Assembly (NCBI RefSeq): GCF_003704095.1
Contig: NW_020845264.1
Location: forward strand, 682,001 to 746,000
Reading direction: 5' to 3'
Source: Pocillopora damicornis
Lineage: Eukaryota
Length of the DNA: 64,000 nt
Each line of letters starts with the position of its first letter. Position 1 is the stretch's first letter. A program made the translations under genes and the position numbers. Positions 13,461 to 21,447 of the stretch are shown here, in pieces. Under the pieces are notes generated by a model that ran no database searches, was not told the origin of the DNA, and saw only the letters and a program-made list of their open reading frames with translations.

Positions 13461-14676
13461 AACTGTCATTGAGCACCATCAGGCCCGCTCGGAACTCATT
13501 TTAGTTTGTAATTCCTTCAAGTGTTACTTCTTTGAACCAAATATAGGTAGTTCTCATAAGTCATATCCAAGTTTCCCTTTTTCCCTGATACAACTCAGAA
13601 ATATACGACCTGCCAATGTATTTTGAGCAAATATTCGGTGAACTCTGGATGCATGTGTAGATTGGCTCTAAATTTTCACATGGTCAGTTTTACAAGTTCT
13701 CTCTTTTCAAAAATCACTGTGCATTTGGATCGAAGACACAAACTGTTTTCCACAATTTGCAAACTGTTAATTCGTCAGTGCTGGTTATATGAATCATCCA
13801 TAACCGCGATCTAAACCTCTTCTCAATTTAGCGGGAAATGTAATGTCCACAATATAAAAGTGCTATCAATTTTTTGACTTCAAGATGGCAAACCGCAAAT
13901 TAATTCACCAAAGAAAGAATCAACCATCTAGCGGTTTTTCTTCCTCTCCTCAAAGCAATTTCTAATTTCTGCCAGGCGATCCTAAAAATAAACACACAAC
14001 TAAAAGGGTTAACAAATAAGATAAAAGATATTCTTCCTCAGTGGGTGTTTCCATCGAGACAATTTCATATTTTTTTTAGGCAGTTTATTTTACAACTGGT
14101 AAGTTATGACAACTGACAATGAACGATTTTAGAACGACAACGAAACCAAAAAAAACGTCAAAACAGAGCAAAGACATTCAAAGAAAAGCGTCGGTTTATT
14201 TTGAAAATTTAACCTGCCAAGCATTATATATTAATGAGATTTTGTGTCTTTGACGTTAAAACAAAATGCGGAAAAACGTCGTCTAAAAAGTGAATCCTGA
14301 GAACGAACATCTGCCGTTTAAATCAGAAGAATCTACCTGGTTAATAGTTCTTTGTGTTTCCCACCAAAATTGTCATTCAACATCGGTATCAAACGACTTG
14401 TTTATAGCACCTGTTCGAGGAAACGCTGGCCATATCCAAGTCTCAATTGAATTAATAATTTACCTATTACCTACTTGATGTGCAAGAAAGCTAGCCAGTC
14501 AGTGATGTTCTTGTACGCCTATGGCAACATCTACCACTCAGTTAGCGTGTTACACCCATATTTACTAAGTCACGGAAAAAATCGTCGTTTATTTTGGTCG
14601 GGCGAGACTTCTGTCAAGAGGAGGATGTAACGTAAATTACCAACCCGAGGAATGTTTTCTCACAGAAATATCTGAT

Positions 14677-17600
14677 ATGCTGTATGAAATGTTCAGCATC
14701 GTGTATTTTTTATTTCTTCTTGGCACATCGGCGACAGTGAGCATGGTTTCATACCCAAACTGTGACCAGCTCTCATCGACCGAGCTAAGTTTTGACGTAG
14801 AGTTCTGGACGACAAGACCATACACAAATTGCCGAGCCACTTCAACAACAAAGCGGACGAGCTTGCAGTCCTGTACAGAGGGTTGAGTATAAATATTTTA
14901 ATTCTAAATATATGCAGTTATTACTGTTTCCAAATCTACCTTAAAATGCAAGATAACACAGAACAAACTGACTACGCGGAGCACTTCCCCACCATATCTG
15001 AAAGTACATCAACAACGTTTTTTTATTGCACCATACGATCAAATCCGTTTTAAGATTCCAAGAACAGTTCGCAAGCTCACTTTCCTTGCAACCCAATCAA
15101 CGACTGTCACTGCGGTCGATTCTATATTGTTATTCTCACTGTGGTTAATTTCATCCCTGAAATTACGAAGAGTAAAACCCAAATTACTGTCAGATAACGC
15201 ATAGACGGATCTTGCATAGGGCCGGCTTCTAAATTAAAACCTCAACGAAAATAATAGGAGATGTCGGTCTTCTTGTCTATATACACAGGAAGCGAAAAAA
15301 ATATGTGAGAACAAAGCCTGTTATCTAACTGAGAACTCTTCATTATTTTTTGAGCGTAATTTGTTCCCCGGAGAGTTATGTCTAATTTACAGTTTGTGTT
15401 TGAATCAGTCTACAAGCCAAGCTAAATACCAGTTCACGTTGTAAAAGCTATAATTTAGAATAACTTGCAGTGCGAAGAGCAGAAAGGGATGTTGGTTTAT
15501 GTTATACAAATAGTTTCTTAAAAATATTACTCTACAGCAATTTCTTTTTCTATTGATTAAGTTAATTTCAGTTTGAAAGGAAGTCTTTGTTCACTTAAGG
15601 GAAAAACGAAATAGGTATTGTTTCATAAATGTTATGCGACTTGAACAAAAACTGGTAATTGCGACGTTATGCAAAACTCGGGTAAAAAAGGTAATGTTAT
15701 TGAATGTTATTTCAAATTTGGGGGGGCGGGAATTTCTTAGAATTAGTTCACAATATAATATTACGGCTTTGACTTTGAACAACTTAGAAAGATATCAGCT
15801 AGAAATGGTATCCTAAATTTTCGTTCTCATGTTTTCATAGCGAATTACAACCGGAGCACTCTCACACTGNNNNNNNNNNNNNNNNNNNNNNNNNNNNNNN
15901 NNNNNNNNNNNNNNNNNNNNNNNNNNNNNNNNNNNNNNNNNNNNNNNNNNNNCCCCCCCCCCCCCCCCCGTTACTTTTCCGGGGAAGAGGCATCTTTCGA
16001 GGTGAGACGCCATAATGTCTCTCAGCGCAGTTCATCTTTTGAAAGTAGTAATGCTCTACCTCGAGCTGTTTTTACATTATCATTATAACTTTCATCCGCC
16101 ATTGGAATTCAAAACGTTCTTATTACAACGACATCATGTGGTAAAACTAGGTCTGCACTGCGCATATGTGTCTAAAACAAATTGAAATGAATGTAATGTT
16201 TGATAACTTCATGCTCAGAGCTGTGCGGCACTTTCAGTCTATTTGGAAGGTCTGCTTAACAAATATCAATGGGTGCATAGGTGTACCAAAGTGTATTAGT
16301 TTTCAAGGAATTTTTTGGATAAACTATGAAACAGTTAGATTGTGAGTTCCGAGTTTTCTAAGCAAATCGATCACGGGAAAGTTTCTAAACTAATCAGATC
16401 ATGACTACCGAAGGACAAAATTTTGCAAATATTTAAGGAATGACAAATAAAATTTAATATGAAATCAGTTTTTGGAAATACGGGAACGGAAAACAAAACA
16501 GAAAGATTTGAACATGAGGTTTCCGTAAAATATTATTACGACAGATCTTCAATTGGTTACCAATAAATTAAATGCCACTTCACTGGCATTCTTGTAATAT
16601 TTATGCCAGTGACGTGGCGTAACCAAATCGCTTACATCGTCACGTTCGGTTAACTTCCGTGGTGTCCAGTTGCTACACACTAGACGTAAAAACAGTTCCA
16701 GCTACAGCTAAGTACAAAACAAAAATAAAACTCAATTTTTTTTTACTTCATCTTAGTTAATAATATAGCAAGTGAATTCGTGAAGTCAAATTCAATTGCG
16801 ATTGTGCAAGCTGATAACGCATCACGTACGGAATTTCTCCCAACAAAACATTGCATCGACTACCGCTTTGAAACTCAGCATTATAAATAAATTGGCTCAT
16901 AGCCTGCTCTGCGTTCATCGAGCAATTCTTACGCAACTTTCGAGCTCTTCAAATCTCCCGCGCTCTATATATCTCGCTGAGTGTACGTTAACGCATGAAA
17001 CACTTGTCGATTTTTCTTAAATCCCTTTCTTAGAGGAGGACCTATATGCCCAACTTTCAATATCGAGCCCTATACTTTTAGGGTTAATCCCCAATGAGCG
17101 CCTCTTTTATTTTGTGGAGGATTATTACTTTGGTAAGTGATCAAAGCGTACTCGTACTTTCTAAACCTCATCTCTATCCATGATTGCAGGCCTTCTTGGT
17201 AAATTCCTTCGCCAGATGATCAGGCCCTCTAAAATATCCTTCAAACCAACTGGAAACATGTTCCAAAAGACTTCCTCGAACAACACTAAAAATGTAACCA
17301 TCGCCATACCTTTTATGATAAAAAGGAATACGAACGATCCATGTGAGATTAAAGTGCATCACTCCAAAGGACCAGCCTACATCGCTAAAAGAAATCAGAT
17401 GCGGCCATTGACACAACTTGGACGGTCGTTTATTAACGGAGGACAGATTATAGGTTTAACACTCATTCTGACGGTTATATCCGGGGTCTTTATGTGGGTA
17501 TTGGTAAGTGGATGGCGCATTTCAAGTGGTTCAGCCAAAATTTACACAAATTTGCCTCGAAATCGTCTGATTTTTGTACTGCTCTTAGTTGACTGGTTCA

Positions 17601-20040
17601 AAGGAATTAAATTTGGTAATTCTATCTCTAGGTAGCCCAATTTTGCGGCCGATAAGGTGGTAACATTGACCGACAAATAAATAAGTCGTCGTTTGTCCAG
17701 CATTTTGTTTTATAGTGTGAAAAATGAAACATTTCTTTCAACAGGATCGCCACAAGAATCCTGTGGACTTCCCTCCTTCATTCATCAGGGGTTCCTGGCA
17801 GGGCTTTTGGTGGGCTTTCGTCACAATGACTACTGTTGGGTAGGTAATATTTTTTACACTTAAATATTGTCATTTTTTTTCTAACTTCCATACTAATGAC
17901 GTGAAAAAGAAACTATTATAATGATTATCATGATGATATTGAGAATAATAATAAATTGATAATGAAAAGGATGATAAAGATTACGATAATTCTGTACTTA
18001 TATGAGGTGATGTCTGTAGGTATGGGGACACTTCTCCTAAGTCCGTGCCAGCTCGTTTGTACAGTATTCTGTGGATGTTGTTGGGTATGGTCGCCTTCTC
18101 GGTTCTTACAGCCAATTTCACGAGTTCTTTGAATTATGAAATTGAAGAAGACTTGAATCTATTTGGAAAAACGGTAAGTGGTGTCTATTGATCGTTTGGC
18201 ACATGATTTGCTGAGCAGCATCGGCAGTAAGTTTCTCAAAACGTCTTTTGGGATGCGTGTCTTGAAAAAAGTCAATGGAGTGTCTGAAGAATAGAATCAA
18301 TATTATTTTTGCGCCCCCGGCTTCAGGTTGCAGTTTTGAATGGAAGTTTGGCGAGGCAAGTGGCGGTGTCAGAAGGGGCAAAATACAAAGGTAGGCAAAG
18401 AGGAACTGATATTGTGAATCATATGTGAGTCCAGAAAAAAAAAAAAAGAGGCGAAAAATAGCGCCACAGTCTCACTCGTACCTCTGCATTCAGAATGAAT
18501 GGCGCTGGATTGAATCAGAGAAAATTAAATCTAAAAATAAAACTCTGCCCTTCGCACCCAATTTCGATTAAATTACCTCATGAACAACGCAAAAATGTAG
18601 CTTTTGAAGTGGTTCTTCCTTCCAAAACCTAACCGGCCGAGTTTGACAGGTTCCAGTTGTGATGACCGGTGAATAAGTTCGAAGAAGCGACTATCATCAG
18701 AATTCCACCACCACCAAGATAAGGTTTAAAGATGTTTTTCATCGTCTCTCTCTCTTTCAGAATACAAAGACCTAAATGCAATGATCGCTGCACTGATTAA
18801 ACAGAAAAACCCACCCATAAATGGTTTCTTAATTGATAGACATATGGCTGTAGCAAGTCTGGAGCAACTTAAAAACAACACCCTGGCTATTGGCCGGACT
18901 ATTGACTACGATTACTACATTGGAATGAGCATAACTCCTCCCTACAACTCAACACAGTTGTGCAACGTGATAAAGAAATGCGCAACGGATGTTCTAAAGA
19001 GCAAAGACTTTGAACTAACAGCGTTACAGGTAATGAACACATAAGACTAAAGTAAACCTAGCTTGTCAGTATAGAATCGTTTCGTTCGGTATAGAATTGT
19101 TTTTGCCTGAAAAGACAGATAACTTGTTATTTCTTGTAATATACTTTTCCAATCCTTTACGACATTAATAGCATTCATTTCTTATGCAATGGGAGAAATA
19201 GAAATGTCGATGAATTTTTCAGAGGTTGGTAGAAAAAGTTCTGCGGATTCTTCCCAAAGTAAACCGAATAACATCCTCCGTTGTTTGATTTTCCTTCCTC
19301 CAGGAAAACTTTTCTTATTATCACTTTTTTTCTCCCATTTTTCGTAGATTCTTTCTCATTCAGTTCCTGTGATAGAGACCGTAAAACAGACAGCCAGTTT
19401 ATTTGAAGATTACGAGTTTCTCATCATTCTACTTGCTTTGTTTGGCATTCTTGTGGGCGGTGGCCTTATCTGGGAATATTTTTATTATAAACCCAAAATG
19501 GAGCGAATAAACAAAGTAAACGGTGAGTCTGAGATTAACCATTCTGTTTTTTTCACTTTTTTCACACTTCCATCTATCTTTTTAGAAGAGAGGCCGTGAA
19601 GACTTTTGGCAATGGGTGAATGAAAATAGGGAAACAAACTAAAGCTTTGAAGCACAATTATCAGCACGCGATTCGAATAACCTGAGTAATCATGTCTTTT
19701 CTCACTTTCGTGTATTCTATATGAGGAAGACTTTGAAATGGAAGGAGATGACGGAAGAAAGGAATCAGAGAGGGCCATCCTGTACACAAATGAAGTTGAA
19801 GAAATGTGTGAGGAATGCAAGGCGAAGGTAGAGAACATCATGAAAGAGGAAGGAAAGAAAAGGTGGCAGAGCATGCAGACCATAATAAGTCCGTTGGAAG
19901 GGTTTTCAATTATCGGTAGTCAGTTGAGTTCTATCCCTGGTGTTTCATCCATCAGAAGAATTGGTTCAGAGATTCCCCACAATGTTCAAAACTTGACGAG
20001 AAAATCAAAAAAGAACAAAAAAGATGGAATGCAACCGTAA
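14677..20040 (+). CDS. Ligand-gated-type channel with iGluR architecture (signal peptide-S1-M1-P loop-M3-S2-M4) and a K+ selectivity filter TVGYGD; GluR0/AvGluR1-like; 8 predicted exons
   Basis: Exons 14677-14881, 17190-17503, 17745-17839, 18020-18173, 18327-18390, 18761-19029, 19348-19522, about 19730-20040; phases are consistent. Signal peptide MFSIVYFLFLLGTSATVS. M1 IIGLTLILTVISGVFMWVL. Pore helix and filter GFWWAFVTMTTVG|YGD, split by intron 17840-18019. M3 ARLYSILWMLLGMVAFSVLTANFTSSL. PBP-like S2 VAVLNGSLA...YKDLNAMIAALIK...INGFLID. M4 FLIILLALFGILVGGGLIWEYFYY. An extra exon could be hidden in the gap at 15870-15952. Confidence 0.85.
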
Positions 20041-21447
20041 AAGCCGACAATTAAAAAAAAAACATTGATATCTTTCCGTATTTCAGTATTTGGAGAGTAT
20101 GGCTCCGGAATTGTTCCAGGAGACTGGACTAACAACTAAATTCCATGTGATGTTCATAAGGAATTAGTGCATGTGACCAAATGAACTGATTTTTTCCTAA
20201 GTAGAGTAGGAGGTTCAAACCATATTGAACACGTCTTGGAGTGTAAACGACCCAAACTTACACATACTGAATGATTTCGCCTGAGCAGATTTATGAACGG
20301 CCAAGGGCTGCCATTTAAGCTTTCATAGAACCCGGCGTCTCTTTAGAAATATAGTATAGTATAATATAGTATAATCTAGTGCAGAGAGATCACATTAAGT
20401 TCTTGTCCCAATTTTTTGGTCCTAGTTTTCTCAGTTTTCTGAATTCTCCTCTCACCAAATTGCTCTTTAAATTCGTTTTGATACAAATAACTTTTTTCAC
20501 CTCAAATCCATTTCAAATGATCAACTAACTGTGAGACAATTTTGTCATCCATGTAACTATCTTAAAACTAATGCCTTCAACTAAATATTTTGTTAACGTT
20601 TTTCTTATTTAGTAGTTAGAACCGATGCCTTTAGTTAAATATTTTGTTGACGTTTTTTTCTTGTTTAGTAGTGAGTCAATGAAGGTATTTTCTATAACAA
20701 TACTTTAAATAGTTTATTAGTCTCCACACAGTGGATGGATTACATTTTTCACAGATTTAACAACAGTGACTAAAAGAAAAGACTCTGCATAGCAAACAAA
20801 TTAGCTTTCTCATAAACGTAAGGGGATTCGTAACAGAGCAGCACTGTCATGGTGTATTCTAGAACTACGATCGTAAGTAGCTATATAATTTTGTTATGCA
20901 AATCGTTAAGTGTCCCTGTGGAAATATTGTAAAAAATTTGGTAACAGCTGTAATAAACACGCCATTGACAGACTTAATCTGGGAAAAATACAACGCGACT
21001 CGTAAAATAATGTCAGATAATGGAATAAGGTGTATGTATCTAATGGAAACAGCGTAGATGTTTGTGTCTATTATTGACTGGACAGTGTGGATAGTTGTTT
21101 ATACTGTAGAGAGAAAAATATCCACCGTAGACAGTGTAGCTTAATCTGACCAGTCAAAGTGATCCATAAACTTTTTCTTTGAGTCTCCTTCACACCATCC
21201 ATCTAAGTATCTAACGACAATATCACATCTGGCAAAACTGAACACAAGCTTTAATCCACCGAGAACTAAATCATCTCACAAAACTTTTGTGCAATCGACC
21301 GTACATGAATGACGCATCAAAAGTGTTACACCATTATATAAAATAGAATAATGAAACAGAGGAAGAGGCTGATATTTGCTGTGTATCGGGCTCTTTATCG
21401 ATAAATGTCGGTCTTTTTTTGCTCACCCTCCCCGGTCCCTAAGACGG

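Follow-up and report, generated by a model that had tools for sequence, protein, structure and literature searches.

Does an animal genome encode a channel that is shaped like a glutamate receptor and carries the selectivity filter of a K+ channel? The question is raised by a locus at positions 14677-20040 (+ strand) of a 64,000-nucleotide (nt) window, the whole stretch of DNA analysed, from the coral Pocillopora damicornis. A preliminary description, made from the sequence alone, had read here a glutamate-receptor-shaped protein with an intact K+ filter and a fourth transmembrane helix, without the amino-terminal domain (ATD) of ionotropic glutamate receptors (iGluRs). We find this architecture borne out by sequence motifs, Pfam matches and a structural model. 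The product of the gene, LOC113671558, is almost certainly an animal member of the GluR0/iGluR superfamily with a K+ filter, no ATD, a fourth membrane helix (M4) and a C-terminal tail. As to function, we lean, from sequence, towards an extracellular-ligand-gated, K+-selective and inhibitory channel with a non-canonical ligand.

Results

LOC113671558 is an expressed gene of eight exons

Positions below are those of the whole window, + strand, and protein numbering follows the 528-residue product. RNA runs X2 (polyA), X3, X14 and X1, from four studies, were mapped onto 14500-20300. Their contigs join eight exons across seven GT-AG introns, one of them within the filter, as the preliminary description had proposed. 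The joints run from 14881 to 17190, 17503 to 17745, 17839 to 18020, 18173 to 18327, 18390 to 18761, 19029 to 19348 and 19522 to 19730. A single 2742-nt contig from run X14 holds all seven, together with the 5′ untranslated region (UTR) and more than 260 nt of the 3′ UTR, which extends beyond 20300. In RNA or RNA-like data of eight studies, about 18 runs contained about half of the sequence words of 17034-20040, a fraction that corresponds to the exonic share. The features of the locus are as follows.

14677-14881, + strand: exon 1, with the start codon, signal peptide (14677-14742) and start of the first binding-domain segment (S1) with RPYT; RNA contigs 14506-14880 joined to 17190; translation identical to XP_027043587.1
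14882-17189, + strand: intron 1, GT..AG, 2308 nt; joint in four of four runs, with only low-depth unspliced pieces inside
17190-17503, + strand: exon 2, with the remainder of S1 (R114 at 17324-17326) and most of the first membrane helix (M1); RNA joints
17745-17839, + strand: exon 3, with the end of M1, the cytoplasmic loop, the pore helix and the first half of the filter (…FWWAFVTMTTVG); joints 17503 to 17745 and 17839 to 18020
17840-18019, + strand: intron 3, which interrupts the G205 codon within TVG/YGD; joint in four of four runs
18020-18173, + strand: exon 4, with YGD, the helix M3 (…SVLTANFTSSL) and the linker from M3 to the second binding-domain segment (S2); RNA joints; Pfam Ion_trans_2 and Lig_chan
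18327-18390, + strand: exon 5, with the start of S2 (VAVLNGS; S263 at 18345-18347); RNA joints; aligns with bacterial VGTVxGS
18761-19029, + strand: exon 6, with the core of S2 (D303 at 18835-18837; conserved C345 and C351); RNA joints
19348-19522, + strand: exon 7, with the end of S2, M4 (19402-19482) and the start of the cytoplasmic tail; RNA joints; hydrophobic stretch 383-413, model helix 389-427
19730-20040, + strand: exon 8, with the cytoplasmic tail, its conserved CxxC (19807-19818) and the stop codon; joint 19522 to 19730 in X2, X14 and X1

The spliced coding sequence of 1587 nt translates into 528 residues that agree letter for letter with P. damicornis XP_027043587.1 / RMX46374.1. 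LOC113671558 is thus a real, expressed P. damicornis gene. It is already annotated in NCBI, as "uncharacterized", and is not a missed gene; its UniProt entry (A0A3M6TYK5) reads "Potassium channel domain-containing protein". Bacterial contamination is ruled out by the introns, the polyA RNA and orthologues that match the species tree. An assembly gap (15870-15952) falls within intron 1 and leaves the protein unaffected, because the mRNA splices 14881 straight to 17190.

A GluR0-type core with a K+ channel filter

The protein is laid out as signal peptide (residues 1-22), S1 (23-146), M1 (147-174), pore helix and filter (186-208, WQGFWWAFVTMTTVGYGD; core string FWWAFVTMTTVGYGD), M3 (214-243), S2 (244-384), M4 (386-412) and a charged 116-residue tail (413-528) with a conserved CxxC. 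Along this order we find the motifs RPYT, EG/LLGKFLRQMI, GFWWAFVTMTTVGYGD (with intron 3 inside the G205 codon) and LTANFTSSL. The hydrophobic helix M4 is followed by KPKMERINK and the tail, and both helix and tail are conserved in the family. Pfam finds no ANF_receptor match in XP_027043587.1, that is, no ATD, and S1 begins about 12 residues past the signal peptide. The protein has neither the SYTANLAAF gate motif nor a Q/R/N-type non-K+ pore; its pore reads TVGYGD. Nor does it have an S1-S4 voltage sensor: there are three transmembrane helices and a pore loop (P), and the N-terminal part is a lobe of the binding domain.

On XP_027043587.1, Pfam returned Ion_trans_2 (4.3e-12), Ion_trans (5.4e-10, limited to the pore end of that model) and Lig_chan (PF00060; 33.3 bits against a cut-off of 30.8, residues 159-245). 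The preliminary description had expected Ion_trans_2 or Lig_chan, and both are there. SBP_bac_3 and Lig_chan-Glu_bd gave no match to S1 or S2, even at E up to 10. Exon by exon, Pfam matched exon 4 only (Ion_trans_2 2.4e-5, Lig_chan 1.8e-4), a search of this kind being too weak for S1 and S2.

We compared a family profile of 16 orthologues with a profile of 46 bacterial proteins that combine SBP_bac_3, Lig_chan and Ion_trans_2 and are GluR0-like. The two are collinear over 321 columns (hhalign, E 2.2e-42). The M1-P-M3 core matched at E 6.3e-38 with 39% identity, motifs outside the filter included, and W(I/L)LDRxxNPxDF at the end of M1 is common to both. S2 alone matched bacterial GluR0-like S2 at E 1.8e-8, and S1 alone did not match bacterial S1 significantly (E 0.31). 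Against a profile of canonical AKDF iGluRs, made with relatives of the intronless kainate-like gene (966 residues) of the same coral, the family scored E 6.6e-5. S2 had no match in the canonical iGluR profile; M4 showed no detectable homology to iGluR M4 (E 0.6), and the end of S2 taken together with M4 gave no match either. A common origin of the coral and iGluR M4 is neither shown nor excluded by these comparisons. Judged by sequence, the family belongs near bacterial GluR0-like channels and is remote from canonical iGluRs.

Like the coral protein, GluR0 and its bacterial relatives (Synechocystis slr1257, 1ii5) have the order S1-M1-P-M3-S2, no ATD and a TVGYGD filter, and the motifs WLxxRxxNPxxF (end of M1) and FTAxITSSLT (M3) are common to the coral family and the bacterial channels. 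The coral gene differs in its seven introns, eukaryotic signal peptide, M4 and conserved 116-residue tail. GluR0 is without M4 and C-terminal domain (CTD), and the bacterial GluR0-like relatives end after S2, at about 350-385 residues, whereas the coral protein continues. Canonical animal iGluRs (AKDF/NMDA/epsilon) share with the coral protein the arrangement of ligand-binding domain (LBD) and transmembrane domain (TMD), an M4 and a cytoplasmic C-terminus. The coral protein differs from them in having a K+ filter, no ATD (the 966-residue kainate-like gene has ANF_receptor) and no SYTANLAAF. The preliminary description had seen a link to iGluRs in the "TAN" at the end of M3 (SVLTANFTSSL), and this did not hold up: the counterparts in paralogues are FTAT, FTGV, FSAH and similar, so the N is not conserved across the family, and the segment belongs to the GluR0-type FTAxITSSLT and not to SYTANLAAF.

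Kv1.3 and Shaker came first among sequence matches in the PDB, since they have almost the same pore helix and filter (FWWAVVTMTTVGYGD in Kv1.3). A pore derived from Kv channels was considered and rejected, as the flanking M1 and M3 segments, like the collinearity over the whole length, are of the GluR0 type. Shaker/Kv channels also differ from the coral protein in having a voltage sensor and no binding-domain flanks, and in their orientation, which would be the opposite one.

The flanks of the pore are predicted to fold as a clamshell

An AlphaFold2 model of the monomer, based on an alignment of 72 sequences from eukaryotes only, reached a pLDDT of 79 as a whole and exceeded 90 in S1, in the membrane core and in S2. 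In the model S1 and S2 form a bilobed binding domain, a clamshell of the class II periplasmic-binding-protein type. The top Foldseek matches were LBD-TMD chains of AMPA, NMDA and kainate receptors, over about 440 columns with E near 1e-10. With VIA-align the top match was the GluR0 ligand-binding core 1ii5 (Z 18.7, root-mean-square deviation 3.1 Å, 209 of 221 residues, model range 34-370). It was followed by Nostoc GluR0 (Z 18.3), class II amino-acid-binding proteins (about 17-18) and the LBD of the rotifer receptor AvGluR1 (4io2; 17.1). The bilobed fold proposed earlier for the flanks is thus supported by the 1ii5 match and, for S2, by the profile match as well.

Four copies of residues 138-250 were also modelled together. 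The tetramer scored 0.67 against 0.00 for the best control, with contacts through residues 198-208, at least 58% contact agreement between runs and a partner pLDDT of at least 74; assembly in this model is through the filter and pore helix. Among proteins with solved structures, 21 of 30 one-chain pairs pass the mark used for assembly, as against 0 of 23 single chains.

Orientation in the membrane and selectivity of the pore

Four features fit an inverted topology, the one shared by iGluRs and GluR0, in which S1 and S2 would be extracellular and the pore loop would dip into the membrane from the cytoplasmic side: the signal peptide, charges of the positive-inside type, sequons for N-glycosylation within S1 and S2, and N-terminal CUB and immunoglobulin (Ig) domains in paralogues. 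Basic stretches follow M1 (DRHKNP), precede M3 (SPKSVPAR) and follow M4 (KPKMERINK), the acidic flanks are EDLN and EDYE, and S1 and S2 carry conserved cysteines besides the sequons. For GluR0 this topology has been demonstrated experimentally (PMC13099474). For the coral protein the preliminary description had taken it from the signal peptide; the features listed are consistent with that proposal.

The filter itself invites comparison with AvGluR1 of the rotifer Adineta vaga, which we compared by structure and description. Polar amino acids gate AvGluR1, which possesses an ATD as well as a canonical amino-acid site. The coral protein resembles it as a eukaryotic iGluR-type subunit with the TXVGYG signature, an M4 and a similar LBD (Z 17.1), and differs from it in having no ATD and no conserved Arg. 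A passage in PMC3483616, citing Janovjak 2011, reports that AvGluR1 carries TXVGYG and yet is Na+-permeable. By analogy, the coral architecture could form a non-selective cation channel, and hence an excitatory receptor; the inverted orientation and extracellular gate could also change how the filter behaves. However, not only the motif but the entire pore helix is nearly identical to that of Shaker/Kv1 (FWWAFVTMTTVGYGD); the filter string is the same in 52 of the 72 family members, and GYGD is present in all 72. The M1-P-M3 core, moreover, is of the bacterial GluR0 type (39% identity), whose prototype is K+ selective according to a passage in PMC12226733 (citing Chen 1999). We therefore regard a non-selective channel as distinctly unlikely.

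The binding cleft has lost the carboxylate clamp in most members

We mapped the canonical ligand contacts through a profile alignment of 46 bacterial GluR0-like proteins and 72 animal members.

S1 Thr column: 43 of 46 in bacteria; mostly M, T, S or Y in the animal family
S1 Arg column: 39 of 46 in bacteria; 4 of 72 in the animal family
S2 Ser/Thr column: 45 of 46 in bacteria; 64 of 72 in the animal family
S2 Asp column (Asp/Glu in animals): 37 of 46 in bacteria; 68 of 72 in the animal family

The ligand-clamping Arg and Thr, kept in the bacterial GluR0-like channels, are thus lost in most animal members, in agreement with the earlier remark that the ITxER amino-acid-binding motif could not be recognized in the coral protein. 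The half of the site that holds the amino group is kept (S263 and D303). A standard alpha-amino acid is unlikely to be the conserved ligand, since conservation covers the Ser/Thr and Asp/Glu of lobe 2 but not the carboxylate clamp. The ligand of the family is probably something else, and the retained contacts give hints of amine-like compounds.

A K+ channel gated by amino acids exactly as GluR0 is (glutamate, glycine, serine and similar) would find some support in the P. damicornis protein. R114 fills the carboxylate-clamp column here and in Stylophora, D303 and S263 are present, and the structure nearest to the model is that of the GluR0 core with bound L-glutamate. However, the position of R114 holds K, T, A, G or E in other orthologues and so is not conserved, the Thr of the T-x-x-x-R motif is Met in the coral protein, and the failure of SBP_bac_3 and Lig_chan-Glu_bd to match also speaks against it. 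We consider amino-acid gating of this kind very unlikely.

The loss of Arg and Thr would also suit a K+ channel whose clamshell no longer binds any small ligand and which is constitutively open or gated in another way: by ions, pH, osmotic or K+ stress (as proposed for cyanobacterial GluR0), by a protein partner or by the cytoplasmic tail. Across Anthozoa the membrane core is 72-95% identical, and S1 and S2 diverge fast, to 21-33% identity between orders, at the distance of anemones or octocorals. The conserved tail with its CxxC suggests intracellular regulation, and the physiological role shown for GluR0 is a response to high K+ (PMC13099474). Against such a channel, the clamshell fold is kept across the family with high model confidence, the lobe-2 Ser/Thr and Asp/Glu contacts are kept in about 90% of members, and the large expansion of paralogues with divergent binding domains is the pattern of a chemoreceptor family. 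A channel of this kind seems unlikely to us on this evidence.

One further feature was noted at the cleft. In stony corals an Asn precedes the lobe-2 "G-S" contact motif, N261-G-S263 (18339-18347), which creates an N-G-S sequon at the cleft mouth.

The cytoplasmic tail matches no Pfam family. From octocorals to stony corals its residues 447-476, in a predicted long helix, hold a near-invariant E447 and C452-x-x-C455; the motif GFSIIGxQLSSIPGVSSI follows the CxxC. The conserved tail may be a regulatory or assembly module.

A proposed mechanism and what weighs against it

In the reading that we favour, an inhibitory K+ channel gated by an extracellular ligand, the LOC113671558 product would contribute one subunit to a tetramer, a P-loop channel within the GluR0/iGluR superfamily. 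After cleavage of the signal peptide, a small bilobed domain of the bacterial SBP_bac_3 type (S1 and S2) would lie outside the cell, interrupted by M1, the re-entrant pore loop and M3, and M4 would lead into the 116-residue tail on the cytoplasmic side. The pore helix and filter of a K+ channel (FWWAFVTMTTVGYGD) would thereby stand in the inverted orientation of iGluRs. An extracellular small molecule would close the clamshell and pull the M3 bundle open, and the resulting K+ efflux would hyperpolarise the cell, making the protein an ionotropic inhibitory receptor. Topology, K+ selectivity, ligand gating and physiological sign are all inferred in this scheme.

Several points weigh against it. 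The proposed topology draws on the signal peptide, the charge pattern and the types of extracellular domain found in paralogues. The filter motif alone is no proof of K+ selectivity, as AvGluR1 carries it and passes Na+. The fold of S1 rests on the model, the similarity of its sequence to bacterial S1 not being significant; the AlphaFold2 model is that of a monomer, and the success of the tetramer may reflect memory of solved K+ pores. A cleft without conserved Arg and Thr could mean that the domain is ligand-free or senses a cue other than a small organic molecule, and the N261-G-S263 glycosylation sequon falls on the cleft motif.

The family extends through cnidarians and several bilaterian phyla

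The family was searched with the Nematostella orthologue and an Owenia member as queries. Cnidarian members were found in hexacorals, octocorals, sea anemones, the scyphozoan Rhopilema and the hydrozoans Hydra, Hydractinia and Clytia, and bilaterian members in the annelids Owenia and Dimorphilus, the brachiopod Lingula and the hemichordates Saccoglossus, Glandiceps and Ptychodera. A search with exon 2 returned 19 relatives, including full-length Nematostella and Actinostola proteins. Relatives are entered in databases as "uncharacterized" or under names that mislead ("Cubilin", "Kv subfamily F member 1"). One cnidarian subfamily has N-terminal CUB and Ig domains and therefore supports an extracellular N-terminus.

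The exon that encodes YGD and M3 has 49 matches in the 234-Mb coral assembly that includes the window. All 48 matches other than the LOC113671558 exon begin at YGD, one base past an AG acceptor, and therefore the filter-splitting intron is common to at least 49 paralogous loci, some of which are possibly pseudogenes. Five pore-exon matches, all on the + strand and with 45-56% identity to the exon, form a tandem cluster of paralogues within 30 kb (G000:C2502:470222-499505). The kainate-like iGluR of the same coral, with ANF_receptor, Lig_chan-Glu_bd and Lig_chan, is encoded by an open reading frame of 966 residues at G000:C2500:195008-197908 (+ strand). It belongs to a 99%-identical database cluster of 312 members and is intronless, unlike the seven-intron gene of the K+ family.

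In a maximum-likelihood tree, animal and bacterial sequences are split with 100% SH-aLRT support. The clade of LOC113671558 orthologues follows anthozoan phylogeny, and bilaterian members nest among cnidarian paralogues, which therefore places the origin of the family before the cnidarian-bilaterian split. When canonical iGluRs serve as the outgroup, the animal K+ family joins the bacterial channels, next to a single long bacterial row. This nesting inside bacteria is not significant, as a tree that keeps all bacteria together is not rejected (approximately unbiased (AU) test, p 0.358), and a recent transfer from bacteria, which we considered, is not established by it. The family may stem from an ancient bacterial transfer with later gain of M4, or from vertical survival of a pre-iGluR form. 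The preliminary description had called the protein an evolutionary intermediate. This is apt for its architecture and is used here in that descriptive sense only; as history it is not established, given the profile matches (E 1e-42 to bacterial GluR0-like channels against 6.6e-5 to iGluRs) and the AU result.

Minor splice forms and other observations at the locus

Intron 7 ends in tandem acceptors, 19726 and 19730, which lie 4 nt apart, and 19730 gives the main mRNA form. The joint 19522 to 19726 is minor and was seen in one low-depth contig of run X3; it shifts the frame to a stop three residues past the joint, with loss of nearly the whole cytoplasmic tail. A donor at 19515, which would restore the frame with acceptor 19726, was rejected, as the joint in mRNA is 19522 to 19730.

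Intron 1 holds an in-frame, stop-free segment of 99 nt (17034-17132, + strand), preceded by a good acceptor (ttcttag) and followed by a good donor (gtaagt). As an extra exon of 33 residues between exons 1 and 2 it was rejected, since no RNA contig splices it in and the orthologues show no insertion at that place; a relic, or a cassette exon that is seldom used, is a possible explanation. About 17 C in a row (15953-15970) come directly after the assembly gap, and RNA or DNA contigs of two runs stop at 15869 with loose letters. In run X1 one contig (depth 27.9) links 20064, within the A-rich 3′ UTR, to the earlier position 16714 in intron 1 through a single A; its most likely source is a chimera formed during assembly where the sequence is rich in A, not a real RNA.

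Discussion

We found no description of an animal family with this architecture in the literature searched; an earlier mention in Janovjak 2011 or in Stroebel & Paoletti 2021 is possible. Ger et al. 2010 placed the combination of binding domain and K+ filter "only in bacteria" (PMC2950845), and metazoan and eukaryote iGluR phylogenies (PMC6307864, PMC12226733) leave an animal K+ filter family unmentioned. Ramos-Vicente 2018 nowhere mentions potassium, GluR0 or AvGluR1; the 2025 eukaryote-wide phylogeny cites GluR0 only as a bacterial prototype. A 2021 preprint describes all eukaryotic iGluRs as N-terminal domain-LBD-TMD-CTD, with GluR0 and AvGluR1 as the two links.

Ionotropic receptors (IRs) of insects and other protostomes offer a parallel. 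A passage in PMC2924276 describes them as iGluR-derived, mostly without an ATD, with glutamate-binding residues lost and with large, divergent chemoreceptor repertoires. IRs, however, are excitatory receptors that descend from canonical iGluRs and have pores of a non-K+ kind, whereas the coral family is GluR0-type with a K+ filter, so that any likeness would be functional only.

More speculatively, and with considerable doubt on our part, the family may be what survives in animals of a stage intermediate between GluR0 and modern iGluRs, with a K+ filter, no ATD and M4 already present. It might serve as an inhibitory ionotropic repertoire for non-amino-acid cues, perhaps amine-like, in which case the approximately 50 coral loci could be a chemosensory or transmitter-receptor set missed by surveys of iGluRs and of K+ channels alike.

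The textbook account of iGluR origin, in which a K+ channel combined with a periplasmic binding protein and M4, the ATD and the loss of K+ selectivity followed, is based on bacterial GluR0 and one rotifer protein. The coral gene belongs to an expressed, conserved animal family that combines a binding domain, a K+ filter and M4 and is present in cnidarians and several bilaterian phyla, with about 50 loci in the coral. With this family in hand, the order of the steps in iGluR evolution becomes directly testable. An artificial counterpart, a light-gated, potassium-selective glutamate receptor, has been engineered. The family raises the possibility that extracellular ligands exert fast, direct, K+-mediated inhibition in animals, and its members are candidates for chemoreception in corals.

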